Sequence record: OR532817.1
Length of the DNA stretch: 64,000 bases
Direction: 5' to 3' (one strand)
Shown here piece after piece: positions 3,068 through 54,757 of this stretch. The position numbers and the translations under genes are program-made. Below the pieces are notes generated by a model, which worked only from the letters and a program-made list of their open reading frames with translations, searched no databases and was not told the origin of the DNA. Numbering within the stretch: the stretch's first letter is position 1; each line of letters starts with the position of its first letter.

Positions 3068-4183
3068 TTAGATATTGTCGCTAATAGGCAGAGTTGGTGC
3101 TTGCCATGATAGTGTACAAATAATTGTCATATTACCATATGAACTTAAATTAACTGATTCATTAAAAATACAAGAAATTATTTCGTCTTTATCAGAAACA
3201 ATGTGATTTGTTTCATTGATTACATATCTACTTTGCATTGATATATCAAAATAATCATAACCAGCAATAACAGTACCACCAATATCCTCATTTGCTTCCC
3301 CACTGAAACGAATTTTCATATCAGTTACTGGTGGTTCATACCCCTGTGTTACATTTACTTCGATATTAGTGACAAGATATCCAGCAGGACAAGTACCAAT
3401 AACCAGTACTGTATTAGTGTATGAATGATCGATAGTGTTCACTATAACAACTATATCCTTACCGGCATCTCCTTTATCACCCTTCTCACCTTGCAAGCCT
3501 TCTTTACCACGAAATTCAATGCCAGTGCTCCATTCTTTTTGTACTGGATCTGTATTTTCCACAATATCTACATAATATAATTTACCATCACTTGTGTTAT
3601 AGAAACAATAATCTTCTGGAAGATTAGTAATATCAGGGAAAGTGCTTCCGGTACTATCAATGTGGAATCTACCGCGTGGACCTACTTCACCCCTGAAGCT
3701 AATACCGCTCGACCACGTTTGAGTACTGGAATCATAAAAATAAAGTTTTCCATCATTGGTATTATAGAAAGTATAACCATCAAATAAACCCGAAGTAGGG
3801 AATACCGTACCAGAACTATCTATATGGAATGGTTTACCCTGTTCACCTTGCTCACCTTTTCCAAATTCAACCGAATTCCATGTGCTTGACTCACCTGGAT
3901 TTGAAGTTTTAAAATACAAAACACTTGTGGAATTTGCTAAGCTCAGATAGCTCCACCCAATAGTTTTATCTGTATTAAAATCACTGTCAGGTATTTCAAA
4001 ACCAATTTCGTTTGGATAAAAATTACTTCCATCAGAACCGTCATGACCGACAACCAGACCTAAATCTTCAATGGTATTATCTGCATAAGTTACAATCAAA
4101 TGACCATCTGTGCTGATTTTCATACTTTTAATACCAGAATTATTACATGAGCAATTGGACCCATTATTAAATGAAATTGTCAT
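3068..4183 (-). CDS. Structural protein with short collagen-like G-X-Y segments (371 aa)
   Basis: GKGEQGEQGKP and GKEGLQGEKGDKGDAGKD; duplicated F(H/R)IDSxG..FP...FYNTxDGKLY module; TAAATA on the minus strand at 4216-4221. Confidence 0.6.
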   Translation of the reverse strand: MTISFNNGSNCSCNNSGIKSMKISTDGHLIVTYADNTIEDLGLVVGHDGSDGSNFYPNEIGFEIPDSDFNTDKTIGWSYLSLANSTSVLYFKTSNPGESSTWNSVEFGKGEQGEQGKPFHIDSSGTVFPTSGLFDGYTFYNTNDGKLYFYDSSTQTWSSGISFRGEVGPRGRFHIDSTGSTFPDITNLPEDYCFYNTSDGKLYYVDIVENTDPVQKEWSTGIEFRGKEGLQGEKGDKGDAGKDIVVIVNTIDHSYTNTVLVIGTCPAGYLVTNIEVNVTQGYEPPVTDMKIRFSGEANEDIGGTVIAGYDYFDISMQSRYVINETNHIVSDKDEIISCIFNESVNLSSYGNMTIICTLSWQAPTLPISDNI

Positions 4184-4299
4184 ATTTATATCCTTTAATG
4201 AATATCATCTAGAAATATTTATCCAGTACTATACTCTTTTGGTTAGTATATAAAGCACAATAAATAAGTTAAAGTTCATAATAAAAGGGCTTAACGATT

Positions 4300-9985: not shown

Positions 9986-12295
9986 ATGAATCTACAAAAA
10001 CTATTTAAAGTAAGCGATGATCTGGCAACTTCTCTTGGTCATACATATCTTACTATTGACCATATTAGTGCTACACTTCTTGAAGTTGATAGTATTGTAG
10101 AACTATTCAATACCATGAATATTGATACAAATAAACTTCACAGTCGTGTGATGAATTTTCTGAAAAGTACTGAATATCCAAATCAACCGGCTAGTATGTC
10201 AGCTAATGGGACTAACAGTAGTTCTTTGTTGGTAAATCGCGTATTCAATGAACTGTCAAAAAAATCAGTTATTGAACAACTTAAACGTGATGATTTTACA
10301 ATTGATTCATACTTTGTACTATTTGAATGCTTGTCTTTCCCTAATACAGCACTAGAAGCTGCGTTAAAAGAAGAAGGCGTGTCTCGCACTGAAGCAGCAC
10401 GTGCATTACAAAAACATGTGGCGAAAATCGATAGTTCCATCAATCTACAAAGTATTGCTGAAGATCCTAATTCATCAGATAAGAAAGCGACGGCGGGACA
10501 AATGAATGCAATTAAACAAAAAACTCTAGAAGATTTTACTGTAAACCTGACTAAACTTGCACAGGAAGGTAAACTTGACCCAATGATCGGTCGCCAAAAA
10601 GAACTTCAATCACTAATTGAAGTAATGGCACGTAAAAACAAAAAGAATGCTATTCTTACTGGTGATGCAGGAGTCGGTAAAACTCAGATCGTCGATGGTT
10701 TTGCACAAGCCATTGCTGATGGTGACGTACCTGACTATCTGAAAGGTGTTGAGGTATTATCTCTTAACGTTTCTGCTGTAACTGCTGGTACAAAATACCG
10801 TGGTGAATTCGAAGAACGTATGGAAGGTATTATTAAAGAACTTAAAAAACGAGAAAATGTAATTTTGTTCATTGATGAAGTACATATTATGATGGGTGCT
10901 GGTGGTAGCAGTACTGGATCTATGGATATGAGCAATATCATGAAACCAGCACTTTCACGTGGTGATATTCGTGTTATCGGTGCAACAACTTATGAGGAAT
11001 ATCGCCAGAACATTGAAAAAGATGCTGCATTTTCCCGCCGATTCACCAAAATTGATGTAGTTGAACCTAGTATTAACGAAACACGTGAAATTATTAATGG
11101 ACTGAAAGGTACTTATGAAAAATATCACAACGTAACATTCAGTACTGAAACAATTAACTCAATTATTAATCTGAGTTCTAAATTTTTACAAAATAAAAAG
11201 TTTCCAGATAAAGCAATTGATCTGATGGATAGTGCTGCTGCTAAAATTCGTTCAGAAAAACGTTCAGATCTAAAAGTTACGGTACGTGATATTGAAGAAG
11301 TTGTGTCCAGAATCACAAACCTTGATATTAGTGTTATTTCTTGTACTGAAAGTGAACGCATGAATAATCTACCCGATGTTCTACGTTCGCGTGTATTTGG
11401 TCAAGATGAAGCAATCGAAAAATTGGTCGATAACGTTATGGTTGCACGTGCTGGGCTACGTGATAAATCAAGTGTTCAGGGTGCTTTCATGTTTGTTGGA
11501 CCATCTGGTACTGGCAAAACTGAAATCACAAAAGCACTTGCTGAAGCAATGGGTTCTGAGCTAATTCGTTTTGATATGTCAGAGTTTTCGCAAGACCACA
11601 CTGTATCTAAACTTATTGGTTCACCTCCTGGATATGTAGGACATGAAACAGGCAATGGTCAGCTTCTTGATAAAGTTGAACAATTCCCTAATGCAGTACT
11701 TCTACTGGATGAAATTGAAAAAGCACATCCAAAAGTACTGCTGACATTCCTACAAGTATTGGATGAAGGGCGTTTGACTGGTTCACAAGGAAAAACAGTT
11801 TACTTTAATAATATTACTGTTATTATGACTACAAACCTTGGAGCAGCAGATTCCAATAAACGTAGTATCGGTGTAAGTACAGTGGATTCTGCACAAGAAA
11901 AAGCTATTAAAGCATTTTTACCACCAGAATTCATCAATCGCATTGATAGTATTGTTAAATTCAATGAACTATCATCAGAAGCAATTGATAGTGTAATTGA
12001 CAAGTTTATGGGGGCATTGCGTGAACAAGTTAAAGAACGTGGAATTGAAGTGGTACTGACCAAACGTGCACGAGAATATCTTGCAGAGAATGGTGTTCAG
12101 AACGGCATGGGTGCTCGTCCAATGAAACGTTTGATTGAGCAATGCATTCGTGTACCTTTGGCAAAAGAAATGCTTCTAGGCTCTCTGGTGAACGGTGGTA
12201 AGGTAACGTTTGATGTGATTGGTGGTAAGATTGCAATTAAACAAAAAGTTAAAAAATCCACAAAGGAAATTGATTCAGCAGAATTAGAGGCGTAA
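9986..12295 (+). CDS. clpA: ClpA-like AAA+ ATP-dependent unfoldase (769 aa)
   Basis: Clp N-domain; Walker A GDAGVGKT and GPSGTGKT; pore loops AGTKYRGEFE and GYVG; Walker B FIDE and LLDEIEKAH; GARP. No obvious ClpB coiled-coil M domain. Confidence 0.9.
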   Translation: MNLQKLFKVSDDLATSLGHTYLTIDHISATLLEVDSIVELFNTMNIDTNKLHSRVMNFLKSTEYPNQPASMSANGTNSSSLLVNRVFNELSKKSVIEQLKRDDFTIDSYFVLFECLSFPNTALEAALKEEGVSRTEAARALQKHVAKIDSSINLQSIAEDPNSSDKKATAGQMNAIKQKTLEDFTVNLTKLAQEGKLDPMIGRQKELQSLIEVMARKNKKNAILTGDAGVGKTQIVDGFAQAIADGDVPDYLKGVEVLSLNVSAVTAGTKYRGEFEERMEGIIKELKKRENVILFIDEVHIMMGAGGSSTGSMDMSNIMKPALSRGDIRVIGATTYEEYRQNIEKDAAFSRRFTKIDVVEPSINETREIINGLKGTYEKYHNVTFSTETINSIINLSSKFLQNKKFPDKAIDLMDSAAAKIRSEKRSDLKVTVRDIEEVVSRITNLDISVISCTESERMNNLPDVLRSRVFGQDEAIEKLVDNVMVARAGLRDKSSVQGAFMFVGPSGTGKTEITKALAEAMGSELIRFDMSEFSQDHTVSKLIGSPPGYVGHETGNGQLLDKVEQFPNAVLLLDEIEKAHPKVLLTFLQVLDEGRLTGSQGKTVYFNNITVIMTTNLGAADSNKRSIGVSTVDSAQEKAIKAFLPPEFINRIDSIVKFNELSSEAIDSVIDKFMGALREQVKERGIEVVLTKRAREYLAENGVQNGMGARPMKRLIEQCIRVPLAKEMLLGSLVNGGKVTFDVIGGKIAIKQKVKKSTKEIDSAELEA

Positions 12296-21300: not shown

Positions 21301-22299
21301 CCAGTACATAGTGGTATTTCCATAAACTTTACCACTTTTAATTAATACAACATCACCATCAAGTGGTTCACCACTTACACGTTCTGGTGTTTCTTCATCT
21401 GGGTCTAATGCTAAACCATAAACGCGAGTACCATCCTGCATTTGGTTGATGTATACTTTATAAATTCTGTTATTTTCACCACTGTTACCAATGCTGGTAA
21501 AAAGAATACGCATTCCGTCTAATGGGATTTGTCCATCAATACGAATACCCTGATTAATATCTTTTTGTACGATATCTTCTGGTTTTAATGAATCACTTAG
21601 TAGATCCACCACACCACGGAACTGTGTACCAAAATTGATTAGTTCGATATCTTTGTTATATTCAATAATTGGTACTTGTGCACGTACAAAACGATTATCA
21701 TATGATAATTCATCATTCAGTACTGAACCATCTGGTAAAGTATCACCAATGGTATACCAGAAGTTTTGTAATGACCATAAGTTTCCGTTTTTAGCATTAC
21801 GTTGCATTACAACATAATCAGGACTAGTGATACCATATTCATTTTCAGTATCCCAAAGATATGAACTAAAATTAATCATTTTATTTGGATTAATTGGTGG
21901 AGTCCATGAATAAATTCTTGAATTAAACAGTCGGCTTTGATTATCAGTAATTGCACCATAATGATTCATATAAGAAACCAGATCATCATAGAATTCAATA
22001 CTACGAATACTTTGATCTACATTACGGGAGACATAAGCTGGAGATAACTGATATGCTTGACGTGGTTGTGTTGATTCATTAACGAAAATCTTACCACTCG
22101 CTGCTGGAGAACCCATATCACCAAGATACCCATCAACTATTTTTTGTTCTGTGGGATTAAAGAATTGTTGAATAACATCATCACATACCTTTTGGATATC
22201 TTCCAAGCCTTGCATCCATTCTGGTAATCTCTTAATGAACAACTTTTGTTGTACTGCTTCAGCCGTTTTTGTTGGTTGAAACTTAAAATCATTAGCCAT
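12331..22299 (-). CDS. Giant (~3320 aa) virion protein, probable baseplate wedge component
   Basis: Uninterrupted 10 kb ORF downstream of gp6- and gp25-like genes. GGAG favours the start at 22299 (MANDFKF) over the track's 22311. Confidence 0.6.
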   Translation of the reverse strand: MANDFKFQPTKTAEAVQQKLFIKRLPEWMQGLEDIQKVCDDVIQQFFNPTEQKIVDGYLGDMGSPAASGKIFVNESTQPRQAYQLSPAYVSRNVDQSIRSIEFYDDLVSYMNHYGAITDNQSRLFNSRIYSWTPPINPNKMINFSSYLWDTENEYGITSPDYVVMQRNAKNGNLWSLQNFWYTIGDTLPDGSVLNDELSYDNRFVRAQVPIIEYNKDIELINFGTQFRGVVDLLSDSLKPEDIVQKDINQGIRIDGQIPLDGMRILFTSIGNSGENNRIYKVYINQMQDGTRVYGLALDPDEETPERVSGEPLDGDVVLIKSGKVYGNTTMYWNGHNWIATQKKNGTNAFPLFQLYDRNGVKLQDSTVYPSSTFSGSSLFGLKINYNYKVDSYYGYNVELGDYNYYIYENFIESTRYEYISSGETKEIPGFYYYNIIGDEDSVLKTDWVRSTEFSKQFVKQTPQVERTDMYRVFSTVYEMESFSSQAIDGMYAYVIETNATYQYYKEESETYYDWHMVNTEGIQSELYNRSYELAQKVIDGSSDIIEIQVNGVVVEDYTRNVSNGKVQSITIGDSVDLDSESVIQIRTYSSTEVPDTDLGSYEIPVNLQNNPYSDNISYIDQSNYTLHFQEIVQKNITSGAVDNINNYEERLEQGLVDNAVGTKIIQNEGSLLPLMAHTANSDIDLFEALMFLQGEYLRFNNRFENYMLNMYKEDPSKFLSTSSSDICDAILSNINVGKDSTFAFYYDGVGSTTTTIRTFIPPTPQFMGVLKVHKPEKTVYLTAASKQVPYNIRHTGEITKSYRVINGVDKMDDVIYELENRIYNSIDNTFKDEDYQPELDSSDLFPTPYYRDTEYSAEERDELLLRGYINFIATNGIDSTTHNYDQQNWMTWNYSGTYYTVNGVITDFPARGSWRAIYTDQFGTYRPATHPWEMFGFGVRPTWWNQEYEPTEVQVGTNEDDILYVYEALVVNESGELVPSGLWDVNGVKGDASTGTILYGDRKGQHDKYKRFGTQPFVITKTGEYSTNGKEICTVDYIQPDVLGLVKGTIKERSAPWSYGDMGDNEFTYMNNAMFSYDVMMQIYRAKPAQFCNYFWDTLNDTLKTVKNGGLQLQYKETRTRLNFNSDTVVHGENNTRVLGYQMAVSNYLTYQSKNITSKYGDLVRTSYISIAHKLGGFTKSNELTFTSESFGLISQENQTIGLVRSNNIKNEVLSAVKITFNGSNYIIKGYDLVNATFTYKLPVKNGKKVTVTEGNRTVVHYMEWKEDDTLEYGSILNTFQDVYTFLCGYGQYLVEHGWIFEDVDDTGVQQDWSTIAKYFLQWSTTDLTIGDYISCTPSSKNAKFGTYFGSVQSISETNGGVWSLLDDDNSGIYPYEVETSRIGNVFTVRVNEDADKRMALVRLGVCSWEHAVVFDDKTIFGDSIYQPTFGSIQELVKMYGYITDNWVGRLQAPGFIILEAGTLPSFETLVTNFQHYYDSNDPVSDVQLYDLSTHVIGYQTRDYLQQMITNNPNRVDFYRGFIRDKGSNLVMERVLRVSKSYNTDEYKALQEWAFKVGTYGNVNAKKNLQFQLINSDFKQEPQLVTFNKDVNTSTSSTEIVYYGSQGEDSRWITRPKGKFRFPMRSGKSDNIHLPDIGPVNLNEVSYTTWTYQDSYEDRMNYIKNNGENPDSVWMFVDMNQEWNIFDLVDTGVSMLSITPIENTDTYAEQYCTVQLDAEAPLDDGDYYYFVDDTYFMPDALTVESQYFTAGDDKTKIVVPFDTSITINFTDPDTRPKLYKYTSRFSDTTERQAYIDKKYSFDVPDSTLFDRPSTYNSKTNITELYLNIFDPINGVLPGTAMKDVSYISPVDPAQYNSNGETLQAWGSEKVGQVWWDTSTAFYLDYTRPVLDENGDIDEDATNEYRRYNWGRLLPHSDINVLEWVKSPVQPYNWDKYCQEQTKNNKNNTMYIPSGTAIMDNYTSFIEYDETTDSYVTYYYFWVRDTIYVPPINTRSKSCTDIARIIKDPHLLDVPWFAPINENSFILSNMQYEITDDTSILTVSYHEDSVDIIKHEQYQLCKEGDSYNFNSDIWNSLWNSLKGHETTKSGVVNEIVYPDVELGLGSSKTWFMDLIEARRTFVDSANNYYKTQNIITDTVLMSEVFNVKTTEVNENSVTFRVLAYNNEFVVSTDFDKFDENDAVILSSTGVLPSPLDTTSVYFVHYDSNGYIRFMTTKSTDANPSTITLEGLGEGQHSMIKQSDYVESLGTSLDMTQYWEYADWYSDGYDENTDYTQEASLDIANTKNYQVGDVIRITDSDGWTMYVKTSSRNTVFWNAIGRQNSTIALNSSLYDGYEVYNSDGSLSNKEINVRSALDLIKNTFDLAQSNIVFDMVKYVHVEQGVVDWVFKTSYIYIVGLEQSLKQNYTNDELINQIIEYFNEVKPYRTKIRSQIEQKTSDTDYVYGVCNDLDPNGYEYNGTIWVKTQSDIWDYEYAEYNESTGQWVVVGSIPNDFVYPDRKFQEIDISMQFDNVQCQPDSDLYDVTSLEENNAKYVSNSDDNVQYYEIQRFKYTLPVVEVDEIYTQISVDMFELYSDFDTSLDLVDAINAWYKLNVDDAERTESFTSDLDRITSELYSTSNLTQDVRMYSQYNTLSNRLKLYSSMSSDVIHDTIGCGLSGEIYNDNPNTRLPFGFSSSSDFNMGYFEISEDLFAHYRELILEETPDADEETIRSVMEIEYGIYCFKYDIDSQGRYYKDAIHVLTAIRNTFDKDSDDPYAYAEDILNSNRKSMDIQAFVMIPRKYIRFNINGSYVSIPDDRSIDEYMEDLFITDGSVVTAVEIDMDDLEMDDNNPMYSDYMVVLEGIKGQKYYNDMNAYDNLGLESQYKTVALSYEGDLTESVFIDISELNPSANAISQMRFTVDGYSNDSTSLQQIKDFSRFQIEGFVVLNPYKRTEAIVSIPPYSLVQNYVNRTVIKKDSYNYISTIDSIISSTEFLMKNSNLNSGDKVMVFTPDGDDYYRYQNFTHELILSTDKIKENDRPIMFEVELNNGIYSLVDSNGNKLEFNNLTTNNTGEPYTKTSINVIRIRSFADHEFNNNGDLLYESIRNYRVDVMDYDVFYDISLNNGDYTDEIDPLDLDVWLISNELVETSDGVVDSGYFMPNTGVGTLDELVRIGTPESLEFTVYEYDVDDIKPVFDGVRWTYSYDLTDKVYIGDTTCTVTSVTKVENENTTYVVEPVSVGTYSVKDNIITGSTSYDDIIVLGYEKVHVRNNNNILRSDMYSAEHYFAKGETYTFTGINLGVELNFSVYKNYYKPIDVSVYANSLKIDGLVLNNLLNVI

Positions 22300-26046: not shown

Positions 26047-26054
26047 TATTTATA
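26047..26054 (-). promoter_or_regulatory. T4-type late promoter TATAAATA
   Basis: Exact T4 late consensus upstream of the gp6-like gene; a gp55-like sigma factor is encoded in the window. Confidence 0.6.
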
Positions 26055-26984: not shown

Positions 26985-27011
26985 ATTTTTACCTCTTTTA
27001 CTTAAATTTAC

Positions 27012-27040
27012 TTGACTTTGTATTTATATTAGAGTACATT
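27012..27040 (+). promoter_or_regulatory. Sigma70-like promoter overlapping a divergent late promoter
   Basis: TTGACT-17 nt-TACATT upstream of ORF 27095; the spacer contains TATAAATA on the minus strand. Confidence 0.5.
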
Positions 27041-27094
27041 TGTGTAGTAAAAATATTTGAATACTAAAAGTTGTTAATTATTTAAGGTGTTTAA

Positions 27095-27517
27095 ATGAGA
27101 TATGATGTTATAAATGATGTTAGATCTGTTTCTGTGGTTAATAAAAAGTACTTCTATAAACCAAAAGGTAAAAACAATAAGAAGTATGAAACCATGATTG
27201 ATGAATACGGAACAGAAGTGATTTGTAGTGATGTACCACTTGATTTACCAGAATTATCATATGAATACAATTCTTCAATTGAATACAATGGTGTTGAATT
27301 TATTTATAGAACGTATATTCGTGATAATTATGAAATAGAAGATGATGTAATATACAGACGTATGACAGATTACACTGAAATGGATGAAGATGAGCTATTC
27401 CAGTACTCATTGGTATTCGAGAATGATAATTTTTCATTTCATGATGCAGTTAAAATACAAAAATGGTTAATTATGAGATATCGTGTTGTTAATACCACGA
27501 TTAATGTGGATTTATAA
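27095..27517 (+). CDS. Hypothetical protein (140 aa)
   Basis: ORF with AAGGTG RBS; C-terminal MDEDELFQYSLVF resembles a motif I recall from small paralogous proteins of this jumbo-phage group (inference). Confidence 0.55.
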   Translation: MRYDVINDVRSVSVVNKKYFYKPKGKNNKKYETMIDEYGTEVICSDVPLDLPELSYEYNSSIEYNGVEFIYRTYIRDNYEIEDDVIYRRMTDYTEMDEDELFQYSLVFENDNFSFHDAVKIQKWLIMRYRVVNTTINVDL

Positions 27518-27528
27518 GAGAGATTATA

Positions 27529-27987
27529 ATGCCTGGAAAACCAGAGAATATTTATGACAATACAGAATTAACCATTATACTGAAAAATGTAAACAATTAC
27601 AAGAATCTAAGTCCAGAAGCAAGGGAGATATTCAAAGAAACGAATATCAAGTACAAACCGAGTGGTGCTGAAAGACCCTATGATATGGATCATATTTACT
27701 ATATGATTAGAGTTCTAACTGAGGTGTCACTTGATTCAGTACGAAAGAGTTTAATTCTAAGAACAGGTGTTGTATTATCTAACAAGTCAATACAAAGATA
27801 TAAGCGTGTTGTAATAGAAGTATCAAAAGCATTGTTATGTACACACAGAAATGGTATTGCTTTGCATATCAAAAAAGAAGAAGGAAAACACTATTTGACA
27901 GATCAACAAAGTTCCAGATTGAACACTTTAAGGAAAAAGGGTGTCCCTATTGAGGACATGATAAATTACCTACAGAAACTGCTCTAG
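27529..27987 (+). CDS. Hypothetical basic protein, possibly DNA-binding (152 aa)
   Basis: K/R-rich; SLDSVRKSLILRTGVVLSNKSIQRYKR is HTH-like; its stop codon abuts the repeat block. Confidence 0.45.
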   Translation: MPGKPENIYDNTELTIILKNVNNYKNLSPEAREIFKETNIKYKPSGAERPYDMDHIYYMIRVLTEVSLDSVRKSLILRTGVVLSNKSIQRYKRVVIEVSKALLCTHRNGIALHIKKEEGKHYLTDQQSSRLNTLRKKGVPIEDMINYLQKLL

Positions 27988-28143
27988 CCCAGTATTCATG
28001 CGGGTTGTAGGAATTAGGGACACCTTTTTGTGTGTTTTTTTGGTGCAGTGTCCCTAATTCAGACCAAGAACCCAGTATTCATGCGGGTTGTAGGAATTAG
28101 GGACACTCTATTATTAAATTCATACTTTTCCTGTCCTTAATTC
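27988..28143. repeat. Two tandem units with 83-bp period: 36-bp exact direct repeat plus 13-bp inverted arm flanking a 24-nt variable spacer
   Basis: CCCAGTATTCATGCGGGTTGTAGGAATTAGGGACAC at 27988-28023 and 28071-28106; inverted arms GTGTCCCTAATTC (28048-28060) and CTGTCCTTAATTC (28131-28143). Confidence 0.9.
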
Positions 28144-28401
28144 AATAGGTCGCTACGCTCAAATATTGATCTTCGTCACTCCGTTCCTCGATCAATATTA
28201 AAATCGGCAATTTGCGTTTTGTTCTCGATTCGCAAGCGAACCAATCACAAACCCGCAGCGAATTGCGAATCTCCCTTCTGTCAGTCAGTAATACTGCTTT
28301 TTGGAGAAAGCAACTCTCGGAGTGATGAAAAACGAATTCCATTCGCCTCATGAAAAACCAACGAATAGTCGGTTCTGTTGAATTACTTGAATTATAATTG
28401 T

Positions 28402-28708
28402 CTGTATTCACTTCTAAGGAGTTTTATACACTTCCTTAGTGGTTCTATGTCTTAAACAAGAAAACACATCAGAATGCAATACAGGAATTCTCGTAGCTAT
28501 TATCAAAGCAGTTACTATCCATTGTAATATCTGCTCCATTAAAAGGACGCCCAATTCAGTACTGAAAAACTTTTGTGAGTAAGTCATTTCAAACTGATTA
28601 ATTTAAGGACACCCATTCAAATTAGCTGTATCCACTTCTAAGAAGTTTTATACAATTCCTTGGTGGTTTTATGTCTTAAACAAGAAAACGCATCAGAATG
28701 CGATACAG
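28402..28708. repeat. Two dispersed 83-nt imperfect direct repeats
   Basis: 28402-28484 and 28626-28708, 76/83 identical by manual alignment; each copy is bounded by CTGTAT...ATACAG. Confidence 0.9.
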
Positions 28709-28737
28709 AGCGTTTTATGTGGTGTTACAGAAATAAC

Positions 28738-28760
28738 AAAAGGAGCACAAGGCTCCCTTT
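28738..28760 (-). terminator. Intrinsic terminator of the gp5-like operon
   Basis: AAAAGGAGC-acaag-GCTCCCTTT just past the stop at 28768. Confidence 0.7.
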
Positions 28761-28767
28761 GTTATTA

Positions 28768-31428
28768 TTACTGACATGCCTCAAGACGACGTGCCATAAA
28801 CTCGGCACGTCTTGTTGTTTGTCCATACCATGCAGAGTTGCGAATGTGGGCCGCTGCCAGGCGATAGTTTCCCTGTGCCATAGCACCAAGCATACCCGTA
28901 AATTGTTGTACACCCCCTTTACCCATCTGGAATACCATCTCGACTAGTACAAGTTGAGCCATATATGGGGTTTTCATCTTATAAGATGCATAGATAGAAC
29001 TGGCATCGTTGATTGCCTTTGTACTATCACGAACCAACATTGCATCAGCTTGTTCTTCGGTAATACCTGAACTGAAGTTTTCACCACGTAATACTAGGTG
29101 TCCATAACCAATAGTTGGGAATCCTCTACTATCAGTATAAGTCCAGAATTTATCATTTCTAAAGTACCCTTTTGCTTGTTGATATTGTTTAGTACCTTCA
29201 AACTCTTTGAGTTCTGGCATTAATGTAGAATCACCTGGTTTGATTTGCCAATCCACCGCAGTTTTATCTACTGTACCAATATTCATTTCTTGTGGGGAGT
29301 AATTAACCACTGTACTGCTTTTTGATGTTCTTGGTCGTCTAACCGGAACATGACGAGATCCACGTTGTGCATAACCAGAACCAATTGTTTGTATCTTGGT
29401 ACTAACAACCAGTTCATTACTATCATTACCAGACACCACTACTGTGTTAGATGATGTTTCTTTAGTAGCTTTACCTTGTATTAGTGTTTTATTTGCACAT
29501 TCTGAACCCGTACCAGTTTGGGTAGCATAGAATAGACCAGGATCTACCGTACCACTAAAACCATATAAATTGGCTGAATCGACGCGAATTTCAAATTTCA
29601 AAATACCACTTGCAGTACCAATTTCTTGTCCTTTTTGTACTACATCTTTACTATACAATGAAGTTTTCAAACCATAAAATACTGATTTATACCCAGAATT
29701 ATGTACAATATACACTGCATTATTATATATACCAACTGTACCGGCATCAGGTGCAACTACAGTAGAATTACATTGTATTTCCCAGCCATTATGATCTGTT
29801 GTACTTCCTTTATTGTCAGTTATATTTTTACCCCAATACCCGTACTGACGAATAATACCATTACATGGCATTAACATGTGAAGACCTTCATATGTTTGGG
29901 AATAACCATTCATACCAGTATCAGTCATTAAATCTTGTGTCTGCACTTGAGATGTTTCTGGGGCGTATGAGATGAACTGTACGGCCTCCTGTTGTTGAGC
30001 CTGTACCAACTGTGGCTGGACGTCATTCGCAGGTTGTGGATGTACTGGTGCCGTAGTTGAACCACTTCCTGAACCATTGTAACCTGTATCTACTGTACTA
30101 CCATGATTTGATGCATCCTGCCAGTTTGAAATATTATGAATATGTTCATTAAGTCCTGCATTTGGTGTTTTAAAGTCCGGTGCCATAAATTCAGCAGTAC
30201 CCTTATTACCTGAAGCATCAACTGTAAGATTCTGCCCACCACCACTGATATTAGTGGATGAATCACCGATGATGTTAGCAGTTGAACCTTTCATGGAAAC
30301 ATTACTACCAGCAGTCACATCAGTACTACTACCGCTTTGTAAACGTAAAGAAGCAGCCGTCACCAATCGTAAATCTGCACCACTATTGATAACTACTTGT
30401 CCTTCTATTTTAGAATCCAATGAACCAAGTAATTCAAGTTTAGTATTACCACTAATACGAGCATTAAGATCCTGTCCAGTTTCTATATTACATGATCTAC
30501 CAGCAACCATATTAATATCCTGACCAGCACGAATGTTAATATTTTTATCGCAGTGAATATTAATATCTCCATCACCGGTAAATGATATACGAGCAGTACC
30601 ATCACGATTGATTAATAAAATATCACCAGTTGCCTCAGATAACATCAACTGAGCACCACTACGAGTACGCAAAACAATACCTTCATTGGTTCTTGCTCCA
30701 ACCCTGGTATCATTCACTGGGTTGTTGAATTGTGTATCCTGATAAGTATCTGGATCATCATCCCATGAAGGAACATTAAGTTCATCATCGGTATATCCAT
30801 CATCTAGTACAAAACTATTACCCCTTGGTGTACTCATACCATATACTGTACTAATCATTTGTCTGGTACTACTTCTGTTAGCTACACCAGCTTCTTTGTC
30901 GTATAAAAGGTTTTGTTTTTTTAAACCTTCAACGATAGGAACATTGACATATTTTTCATTTTGATCAGTACTGATGGTATTTCTGTCATAATCGGTAACT
31001 GGTAATGGAGAATCTGTACCACTATATTGTGATGTAGTGGAAGTTGCCATACCTGGAACCATTGTGTTCATTCGTTGTTCGTATATACAACCAATCCAGT
31101 AAGCTTCATGTGATCTACCCTGAATGAATATAACAATTACTGGACAGCCTACATCGGGAGGTACCGCCCAGAATCCATAACCTTTTGGATACTGACCGTA
31201 TGCATCAGCACTCGGTACACCTGGGGTTTTACCTGCAAATGGAGACATATAAGAACATTCAATCCATGATTTCTTATCGTCTCGTTCACTTTGTGAACCC
31301 TGAACCCATACTTTAATTTTACCACTCATAGTAGGATCTCGGTTGTCCATAACAATCGCTACCTGTGGATAAGCTGGGTCAAAACGACCCAACTGTTCTT
31401 TTGCATACTGTTTACTTGTATCTACCAT
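28768..31428 (-). CDS. Baseplate hub/spike protein, gp5-like: OB fold, beta-helix, degenerate M23-like domain and C-terminal GH24 lysozyme (886 aa)
   Basis: VMDNRDPTMSGKIKVWV and WAVPPDVGCPVIVIF (gp5 OB fold); RTRSGAQLML and beta-repeats; HNGWE...GQEIG..KFEIR; EFEG...TDSRGFPTIGYGHL. Confidence 0.82.
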   Translation of the reverse strand: MVDTSKQYAKEQLGRFDPAYPQVAIVMDNRDPTMSGKIKVWVQGSQSERDDKKSWIECSYMSPFAGKTPGVPSADAYGQYPKGYGFWAVPPDVGCPVIVIFIQGRSHEAYWIGCIYEQRMNTMVPGMATSTTSQYSGTDSPLPVTDYDRNTISTDQNEKYVNVPIVEGLKKQNLLYDKEAGVANRSSTRQMISTVYGMSTPRGNSFVLDDGYTDDELNVPSWDDDPDTYQDTQFNNPVNDTRVGARTNEGIVLRTRSGAQLMLSEATGDILLINRDGTARISFTGDGDINIHCDKNINIRAGQDINMVAGRSCNIETGQDLNARISGNTKLELLGSLDSKIEGQVVINSGADLRLVTAASLRLQSGSSTDVTAGSNVSMKGSTANIIGDSSTNISGGGQNLTVDASGNKGTAEFMAPDFKTPNAGLNEHIHNISNWQDASNHGSTVDTGYNGSGSGSTTAPVHPQPANDVQPQLVQAQQQEAVQFISYAPETSQVQTQDLMTDTGMNGYSQTYEGLHMLMPCNGIIRQYGYWGKNITDNKGSTTDHNGWEIQCNSTVVAPDAGTVGIYNNAVYIVHNSGYKSVFYGLKTSLYSKDVVQKGQEIGTASGILKFEIRVDSANLYGFSGTVDPGLFYATQTGTGSECANKTLIQGKATKETSSNTVVVSGNDSNELVVSTKIQTIGSGYAQRGSRHVPVRRPRTSKSSTVVNYSPQEMNIGTVDKTAVDWQIKPGDSTLMPELKEFEGTKQYQQAKGYFRNDKFWTYTDSRGFPTIGYGHLVLRGENFSSGITEEQADAMLVRDSTKAINDASSIYASYKMKTPYMAQLVLVEMVFQMGKGGVQQFTGMLGAMAQGNYRLAAAHIRNSAWYGQTTRRAEFMARRLEACQ

Positions 31429-34840: not shown

Positions 34841-34958
34841 TTTTTATTTCTCCATTAGGACATTTATAATATTTATATTTGAATAAAAACTATTTTTTGT
34901 ACTATAATATATACAATGATCCATATTATGGACAACGTGCAATCAAAAGGATTTGTAA

Positions 34959-40663: not shown

Positions 40664-40702
40664 AAAATAGGTCAGTACTGAAAAGTACTGACCTATTTTT
40701 TT
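40664..40702 (-). terminator. Intrinsic terminator after the frameshifted chaperone extension
   Basis: Perfect 16-bp stem AAAATAGGTCAGTACT-gaaa-AGTACTGACCTATTTT, a few nt beyond the stop at 40709-40711. Confidence 0.8.
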
Positions 40703-41763: not shown

Positions 41764-41833
41764 AAAGACTCCAATCAATGAACAAAATAAATAATCTATA
41801 TGACATATTTATAAATGTTTAAAAGGATAAAAA

Positions 41834-52450: not shown

Positions 52451-52502
52451 ATTAATATCTTGTTATAAATAATTAATATACATATCGAAAAGGATTTTAA
52501 TA

Positions 52503-54682: not shown

Positions 54683-54757
54683 TACATTATAAATAAAAGC
54701 CTCCTTTTCTGGAGGCTTTTTCTATCTGTTAAGTGCAATTAAAAATAAGGAAATTTA

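Follow-up and report, generated by a model that had tools for sequence, protein, structure and literature searches.

We propose that the inverted arms of a small repeat cassette in the genome of a Klebsiella jumbo myophage are recognition sites of the protein encoded by the adjacent gene, ORF075, and that gene and array together form a two-part unit; we put the probability of this reading at roughly 0.6. The DNA analysed is a 64,000-nt stretch of sequence record OR532817.1 (the window, to which all coordinates refer unless a locus is named). It belongs to the genus Alcyoneusvirus, the RaK2-like phages, and in the 2 kb tested it has 100% identity to phage RCIP0023; RaK2, K64-1, Muenster, and others are ~99% identical. 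The sequence motif of the arms co-varies with the neighbouring protein, keeps its place, and is partly helically phased, which argues that the arms are cognate DNA sites. A first-pass annotation of the locus, made from the letters alone, had suggested a paired array bound by a sequence-specific protein and had named the neighbouring 152-aa protein as a candidate partner. Both suggestions gained support, the former from motif arrays beside ORF075 homologues in nine loci that follow the protein tree, and the latter from the way motif and protein vary together. Integrative islands carry a unit of this kind behind their serine recombinase gene. We infer binding, a DNA rather than an RNA target, and the function of the complex each from sequence comparison.

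Location and anatomy of the cassette

The cassette sits in 780 bp of gene-free DNA between ORF075 on the plus strand and the baseplate hub gene gp5 on the minus strand (Table 1). In phage 121Q, a member of the sister genus, only 36 bp separate gp5 from the lysozyme and gp25 genes that come next; judged from this comparison, the ~1.8 kb from 26985 to 28767, which contain ORF074, ORF075, and the 780 bp of non-coding DNA, are an Alcyoneusvirus-specific insert in the late baseplate operon. The sigma-70-like promoter 5' of ORF074-ORF075 suggests an early transcription unit that opposes the late baseplate genes, while the T4-type late promoter on the other strand is proposed to restart late transcription past the insert. 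The hairpin that ends gp5 is bidirectional and probably ends the ORF074-075 transcript as well. From this layout of promoters and terminator, the insert looks like an early unit transcribed against the late genes. The late promoter octamer was also found at 4183-4190, 26047-26054, 34870-34877, 41806-41813, 52464-52471, and 54688-54695, directly 5' of structural genes; its total count in the window is in no excess over chance. ORF074 has a weak relative in one of the islands (locus L268). Promoters, terminators, and the cassette locus all go unmentioned in the RaK2 genome paper, and a search for tRNA genes found none.

Table 1. Features of the insert and its surroundings, and a small ORF conserved at homologous loci (last six rows, in locus coordinates).
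Feature	Position	Strand	Remarks
Sigma-70-like promoter, 5' of ORF074-ORF075	27012-27040	+	TTGACT, 17 nt, TACATT; consensus match only
T4-type late promoter TATAAATA	27021-27028	-	37 nt ahead of the lysozyme start; octamer precedes several late genes
ORF074	27095-27517	+	140 aa; small-protein family with paralogues in RaK2-like phages
ORF075	27529-27987	+	152 aa; all-helical; candidate arm binder
Site S0, core ATAGGGACAC	27941-27950	-	in the last ORF075 codons (encodes G-V-P-I)
36-bp repeat, copy 1	27988-28023	+	small hairpin (base includes the ORF075 stop codon), linker GTAG, site S1
Site S1, arm GAATTAGGGACAC	28011-28023	+	
Spacer 1	28024-28047		24 nt; T-rich
Site S2	28048-28060	-	perfect inverted copy of S1 (13 bp)
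36-bp repeat, copy 2	28071-28106	+	contains site S3 (28094-28106)
Spacer 2	28107-28130		24 nt; AT-rich, TATA-like
Site S4	28131-28143	-	GAATTAAGGACAG on the minus strand
G+C-richer stretch	28144-28400		non-coding; folds well on both strands
TTCAGTACTGAA box	28555-28566		one copy of an over-represented palindrome
Distal site TTAAGGACAC	28603-28612	+	one mismatch to the core
Terminator hairpin	28732-28766	both	bidirectional; ends gp5 (minus)
gp5	28768-31428	-	baseplate hub gene
48-62-aa ORF	L263:2203-2349		
48-62-aa ORF	L268:3285-3455		
48-62-aa ORF	L267:3798-3953		
48-62-aa ORF	L273:2508-2666		
48-62-aa ORF	L275:2655-2801		
48-62-aa ORF	L271:3685-3873		

The exact 36-bp direct repeat with a period of 83 bp that had been described at this locus was confirmed, and so were the inverted arms: S1 and S2 are perfect complements across a gap of 24 nt, and S3 and S4, across an equal gap, pair at 12 of 13 positions, one of them as G.T. 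The two spacers are indeed unrelated to each other in sequence; they are not free of constraint, however, as T-rich and AT-rich stretches recur by position in the homologous loci. Site S0, inside the 3' end of ORF075, is an extra copy absent from the first-pass annotation, and once it is added five arms alternate in orientation. Of the two more distant half-sites that had been noted, the one near 28606 is a good copy with a single mismatch (Table 1), whereas the one near 28543 is weaker. The sequence TWRGGACAC occurs seven times in the whole 346-kb RaK2 genome, with five of the copies within 673 bp at the cassette. Outside the cassette, that genome has neither the 36-bp repeat nor either spacer. 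Neither 24-nt spacer has a second match in the RaK2 genome at three or fewer mismatches, and a role of the spacers as guides was rejected on this ground.

Two other elements lie in the non-coding DNA beyond S4. A hypothetical-protein ORF annotated in K64-1 and RaK2 (28142-28411, minus) carries indels of +1, +2, -1, and -2 among near-identical relatives; as these break the frame, the annotated ORF is very likely no real gene. Twin 94-nt direct repeats (28391-28484 and 28615-28708; 88% identity, 224 bp apart) each hold a hairpin and a minus-strand terminator-like stem with a T run, and phage Muenster has a single copy. The twin repeats were rejected as part of the 83-bp units, to which they are unrelated in sequence.

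When the close relatives are aligned, the arms are intact in all nine genomes and the length of the spacers is not constant. Spacer 2 measures 24 nt in four genomes and 25 nt in five (RaK2, K64-1, OU509535, phiKp_21, and contig L072), which contradicts the earlier description of exactly 24 nt and of a fixed geometry; the latter is also at odds with the wide variation of site spacing and orientation among the homologous loci. K64-1 has one change in spacer 1. In KP13-7 the first G of GGG in S3 is changed to A, by which S3:S4 becomes fully Watson-Crick, and a contig from wastewater runs (Logan; the contigs are few in depth and scattered) has T in place of the complementary C of S2. The fixed difference of S4, a T, falls at the same position, and because the three changes coincide, all arm variation is on a single core R/Y position. 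The two 36-bp repeats are mutually identical in eight of the nine genomes. Contig L072, the most diverged at 98.2% identity, carries the same A-to-G change in both repeats, a concerted change, and by a count on the alignment its divergence is ~1.3% in the cassette vs ~4.7% in the next 277 bp of non-coding DNA.

The ORF075 family and the motif arrays of homologous loci

A word-based protein search with ORF075 returned its own cluster only, giving it the appearance of an orphan, and an atlas search found nothing; a full HMMER search yielded 15 homologues of 153-186 aa with 26-37% identity over the full length. One of them is a protein of the enteric bacterium Kluyvera cryocrescens, and at another homologous locus the flanking nlpC gene is 68% identical to E. 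coli nlpC. These homologues would constitute a new, previously undescribed protein family with predicted cognate sites, common to RaK2-like phages and serine-recombinase islands, at least some of the latter apparently in enteric bacteria. An alignment-based model of ORF075 reached a pLDDT of 91.6 and has seven helices; the single-sequence fold (pLDDT 39) was useless. Compared with solved structures, the fold gave a best Z of 5.6, no Foldseek match at E 0.001, and no significant match to any solved DNA-binding protein, and searches of Pfam, PHROGs, and PDB gave no significant sequence, profile, or fold match. With no significant structural or profile relative, the ORF075 fold offers no hint of function.

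Nine homologous loci were read (L263, L266, L267, L268, L270, L271, L273, L274, and L275). In seven of them the contig carries a large serine recombinase gene upstream of the ORF075-like gene, and in eight the ORF075-like gene is followed on its 3' side by a gene-free gap of 470-870 bp; the gap is 182 bp in L267, a phage contig in which the homologue lies near an RNA_pol (PF00940) gene. Often there is an HNH endonuclease gene on the upstream side or in the vicinity (immediately upstream, and of the HNH_3 type, in L263, L268, and L270), and a conserved ORF of 48-62 aa, not present in RaK2, often stands just upstream of the ORF075-like gene or precedes the HNH gene (Table 1). The island companion ORFs gave no family match, and for the 48-62-aa ORF there was only a faint ribbon-helix-helix hint.

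In RaK2 and eight of the nine homologous loci, a motif of 10-12 nt is repeated from the stop codon to about +200, typically in both orientations (Table 2). When copies were counted from -60 to +210 around the stop codon and compared with 60 shuffles per locus, the motif was over-represented in six of ten loci including RaK2, with 0 of 60 shuffles reaching the observed count. Loci L263, L266, and L273 have two to three sites of the AATTAGGG(C/T)AAC type, with counts that are not significant alone; their AATTAGGG core is the core used in RaK2. The motif classes track the protein tree: the ATTRTGAGAA loci form one clade (support 99/97), the ATTCTGGTAAC locus is sister to it (93/92), and the loci with AATTAGGG and ATTAGCG fall outside this grouping.

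Table 2. Motif carried by RaK2 and the homologous loci, with number of copies.
Locus	Motif	Copies
RaK2	AATTAGGGACAC type	5
L263	AATTAGGGCAAC	2, direct only
L266	AATTAGGGTAAC	2, and one inverted variant
L273	AATTAGGGTAAC	1, and one inverted variant
L275	AATTAAGACA	4
L274	ATTAGCGTAT	5
L270	ATTCTGGTAAC	4
L268	ATTATGAGAA	8
L271	ATTRTGAGAA	6
L267	CATTATGAGAACCA	6, 1 kb upstream of the gene, not downstream

The position of the sites is kept as well. Of nine loci compared for this feature, eight have a first site that overlaps the stop codon or brackets it; in L266 the TAG stop is inside AATTAGGG, and in L268, L270, L271, and L275 the stop codon is enclosed by an inverted pair of sites. Direct copies are 20-22, 31-33, or 40 bp apart in L267, L268, L270, L271, and L275, and sites of the same orientation are 83-84 bp apart in RaK2. 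These spacings are close to whole DNA turns, with 20-22 and 31-33 bp corresponding to two and three turns, and are as expected for a protein that contacts one face of the double helix. Behind the first site comes a T-rich stretch in RaK2, L263, L266, and L273, and behind the second site an AT-rich, TATA-like one in RaK2, L263, and L266.

Alternative explanations of the arms

The arms could instead work in plus-strand RNA, as part of a long 3' UTR of the early ORF074-075 transcript, with no protein recognising the core: the sites would form mutually exclusive hairpins (0:1 with 2:3, or 1:2 with 3:4), and the ribosome finishing ORF075 would choose the hairpin set and with it mRNA stability or read-through. 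We consider this unlikely. The plus strand folds at -77.4 kcal/mol with a z-score of -4.5, but the minus strand likewise folds better than shuffles. Most genomes have G.U in S3:S4 and KP13-7 has A.U, the wastewater variant turns G-C into G.U, and on the minus strand the same substitutions would give A.C mismatches; the informative substitutions, however, are only three, all at one position. Loop 2 tolerates 24 or 25 nt, and the inverted pairs around the stop codon, which differ in sequence in RaK2, L268, L270, L271, and L275, have the look of stem covariation, whereas the tandem direct copies of L267 and L268 (20-22 and 31-33 bp) cannot pair with one another and all copies in L263 are direct; these three arrays speak against hairpins as the sole explanation. 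No U run comes after the hairpins, and the Rfam search gave no family match, either at the gathering threshold or with E relaxed to 10. Plus-strand folding, pairing-preserving substitutions, and recurring stop-codon stems make it possible that the cassette works through RNA or in step with translation, either by itself or alongside protein binding. A simple intrinsic terminator was rejected as a candidate, given the 24-nt loops and the lack of a T run on either strand; the real terminators of the phage have loops of 2-6 nt.

The other explanations treat the cassette as an element of a known kind. The same 36-bp sequence has been reported as a "putative CRISPR array" in phages GBH019, RaK2, K64-1, and Muenster, with no cas genes present (Blundell-Hunter et al., 2021; PMC8253255). 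A Cas-less mini-array of two 36-bp repeats and one 47-bp spacer that uses the Cas system of the host would explain the two exact repeats at CRISPR-like spacing, which array finders flag, but the last 13 nt of the supposed spacer are the inverse of the repeat's 3' end, and the inverted arm recurs at the same distance past repeat 2 without a third repeat. On both points the statement of the first-pass annotation that this is not a CRISPR array is borne out. The homologous loci, moreover, have 10-12-nt motifs in both orientations and not repeat-spacer arrays, no protospacer-like match was found in phages, plasmids, or E. coli genomes, and the 36-bp repeat had no match among the E. coli genomes or plasmids searched. 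Repeats of Klebsiella CRISPR arrays are 28-29 nt long. The chance of a CRISPR mini-array is close to nil. Nearly as remote is the idea that a T7-type single-subunit RNA polymerase, from Klebsiella podophages such as K11, uses the arms like promoters or is decoyed by them. Annotated K11 promoters (AATTAGGACACACTATAGG or AATTAGGGCACACTATAGG) have AATTAGGG in common with the arms, a TCTAT element follows S3, and there is the polymerase gene near the ORF075 homologue of phage contig L267; the arms, however, are shifted by one base against the K11 promoters and do not have their conserved CACTATAG core, and the motifs at other homologous loci are quite different. No PF00940 match was found in RaK2, which is a weak point because the controls were silent too.

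An origin as REP- or REPIN-like hairpins, substrates or relics of a Y1 (RAYT-type) transposase system with the AATTAGGGACAG palindrome family, is very improbable. The arm core is identical over 11 nt to this family, whose inverted pairs are 20-30 nt apart and which was seen in more than 220 metagenome and MAG loci flanking ~237-aa Y1_Tnp genes on both sides, and GTAG, the classical REP flank, precedes both RaK2 arms. Against this, the cassette is present once per genome (one locus in 346 kb), RaK2 has no PF01797 (Y1 transposase) match while control genomes matched, and E. coli genomes and plasmids gave no match. Some 70% of the family elements form long, nearly perfect hairpins in which there is an inner stem and ACA is followed by G, unlike the RaK2 arms, where the inner stem is missing and ACA is followed by C; GTAG is found in only 12 of 202 family elements and reads GTGG in both L072 repeats; and the AATTAGGG motif is fully explained by the ORF075-family series. 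The common 11-nt core is treated as a coincidence. The REPIN-like family itself (AATTAGGGACAG, covarying inner stem, CTGTCCCTAATT), flanking RAYT-like Y1_Tnp genes, was observed at L080:3284-4068, L225:701-1485, L139:1636-2420, L029, and L117, and is multi-copy in MAGs of Verrucomicrobiota, Omnitrophota, Chlamydiae, Bdellovibrionales, Firestonebacteria, and others. Only marginally more credible, and still very unlikely, is a functionless relic, left by the insertion event or by local duplications. That the unit was inserted in a single lineage and that the adjacent non-coding DNA evolves fast would suit a relic; the mutual identity of the repeats in most genomes, the concerted change in L072, the lower divergence of its cassette than of the DNA that follows, and the recurrence of the same architecture in loci with proteins only ~30% identical all speak against it. 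One further resemblance was set aside: in L025, an IMG/VR temperate-phage contig, two TTAGGGACA N23 TGTCCCTAA palindromes (L025:2600-3006, 215 bp apart) lie between a CI-like repressor gene and an ERF/YqaJ/SSB operon; they are probably that phage's operators, and their likeness to the arms is probably a coincidence.

Proposed function and comparison with known systems

If the arms are protein sites, ORF075 would be made early from a host-type promoter and would bind the 10-12-bp core TTAGGGACAC in double-stranded DNA, with five sites close together (27941-28140) and one or two farther away. The sites would bracket the ORF075 stop codon as well as the short T-rich and AT-rich spacers, and the resulting multi-site protein-DNA complex would amount to an iteron-type control region, located where early plus-strand and late minus-strand transcription meet. 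Its most likely role would be the replication start of the unit or a switch for transcription through it; a packaging or a recombination site, both proposed in the first-pass annotation, would be further candidates. An AT-rich segment of the unwinding type is present beside the sites (the 24-25-nt spacer between S3 and S4). A check of GC skew, which had been suggested for an origin, gave no origin signal at 28 kb, and the cumulative minimum is at ~34 kb, where the direction of transcription switches. The stronger statement that ORF075 and its sites are a self-contained replication or control module, with a fold without known relatives, in both RaK2-like phages and islands seems to us rather improbable.

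The window also contains 33 copies of the palindrome CAGTACTG where 0.66 are expected (~50-fold), about 1 per 2 kb and mostly inside genes (for example at 11140-11147, 21718-21725, 28557-28564, and 40673-40680). The extended form TTCAGTACTGAA is enriched too, with dozens of copies across the RaK2 genome. A similar AGTACTG box was found 320-440 nt after the ORF075-like gene (in one case at +524) in six island loci, and also in L267. As this box is common to islands and phage, the serine-recombinase islands could be satellites or sensors that read signals of RaK2-group phages; another possibility is that the phage locus serves RaK2-like phages as one of their replication origins. The analysis corrects a published "putative CRISPR array" annotation that spans a whole genus of therapeutic-candidate Klebsiella phages, and it provides a first handle on an uncharacterised protein family in the form of a predicted specific DNA target for each member. 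It also brings out a candidate control or origin region of jumbo phages and connects it with the mobile islands of enteric bacteria; these islands may interact with RaK2-like phages.

The proposed two-part unit resembles several known systems in part. As with the operators of temperate-phage repressors, several sites of ~10 nt in both orientations occupy the gap between a regulator and the next genes, and the island unit is found in a regulatory neighbourhood beside an integrase-type recombinase. Unlike such operators, the half-sites vary in spacing and lie at the 3' end of the gene and not at its promoter, and ORF075 has no HTH family match. In the P1 parB-parS and F sopB-sopC systems a centromere site is located downstream of the gene for its binder, and the units of sopC are exact direct repeats that each hold an inverted repeat. 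The 83-bp units of RaK2 are likewise exact direct repeats with an inverted repeat; differences are that here no partition ATPase gene is nearby, that there are only two units, and that the fold is unrelated as far as testable. At oriE of phage T4, in the 3' part of gene 5, there are 12-nt repeats, and early transcripts cross against the late baseplate transcripts (PMC3016281). The parallel with the RaK2 cassette is one of position only: the T4 repeats are inside gene 5, and repEA and repEB are antisense ORFs of 45-50 aa within that gene, unrelated to ORF075. Initiators with adjacent iterons in general (SaPI/PICI rep-ori, plasmid Rep-iteron, and T4 oriE) differ from ORF075, which has only 152 aa and no helicase, primase, or known initiator domain, and from the cassette, where the sites are in both orientations and start inside the last codons of the gene. 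What these systems would have in common with the RaK2 locus are several short copies of the site directly after the gene of the binder, partly in helical phase around AT-rich DNA.
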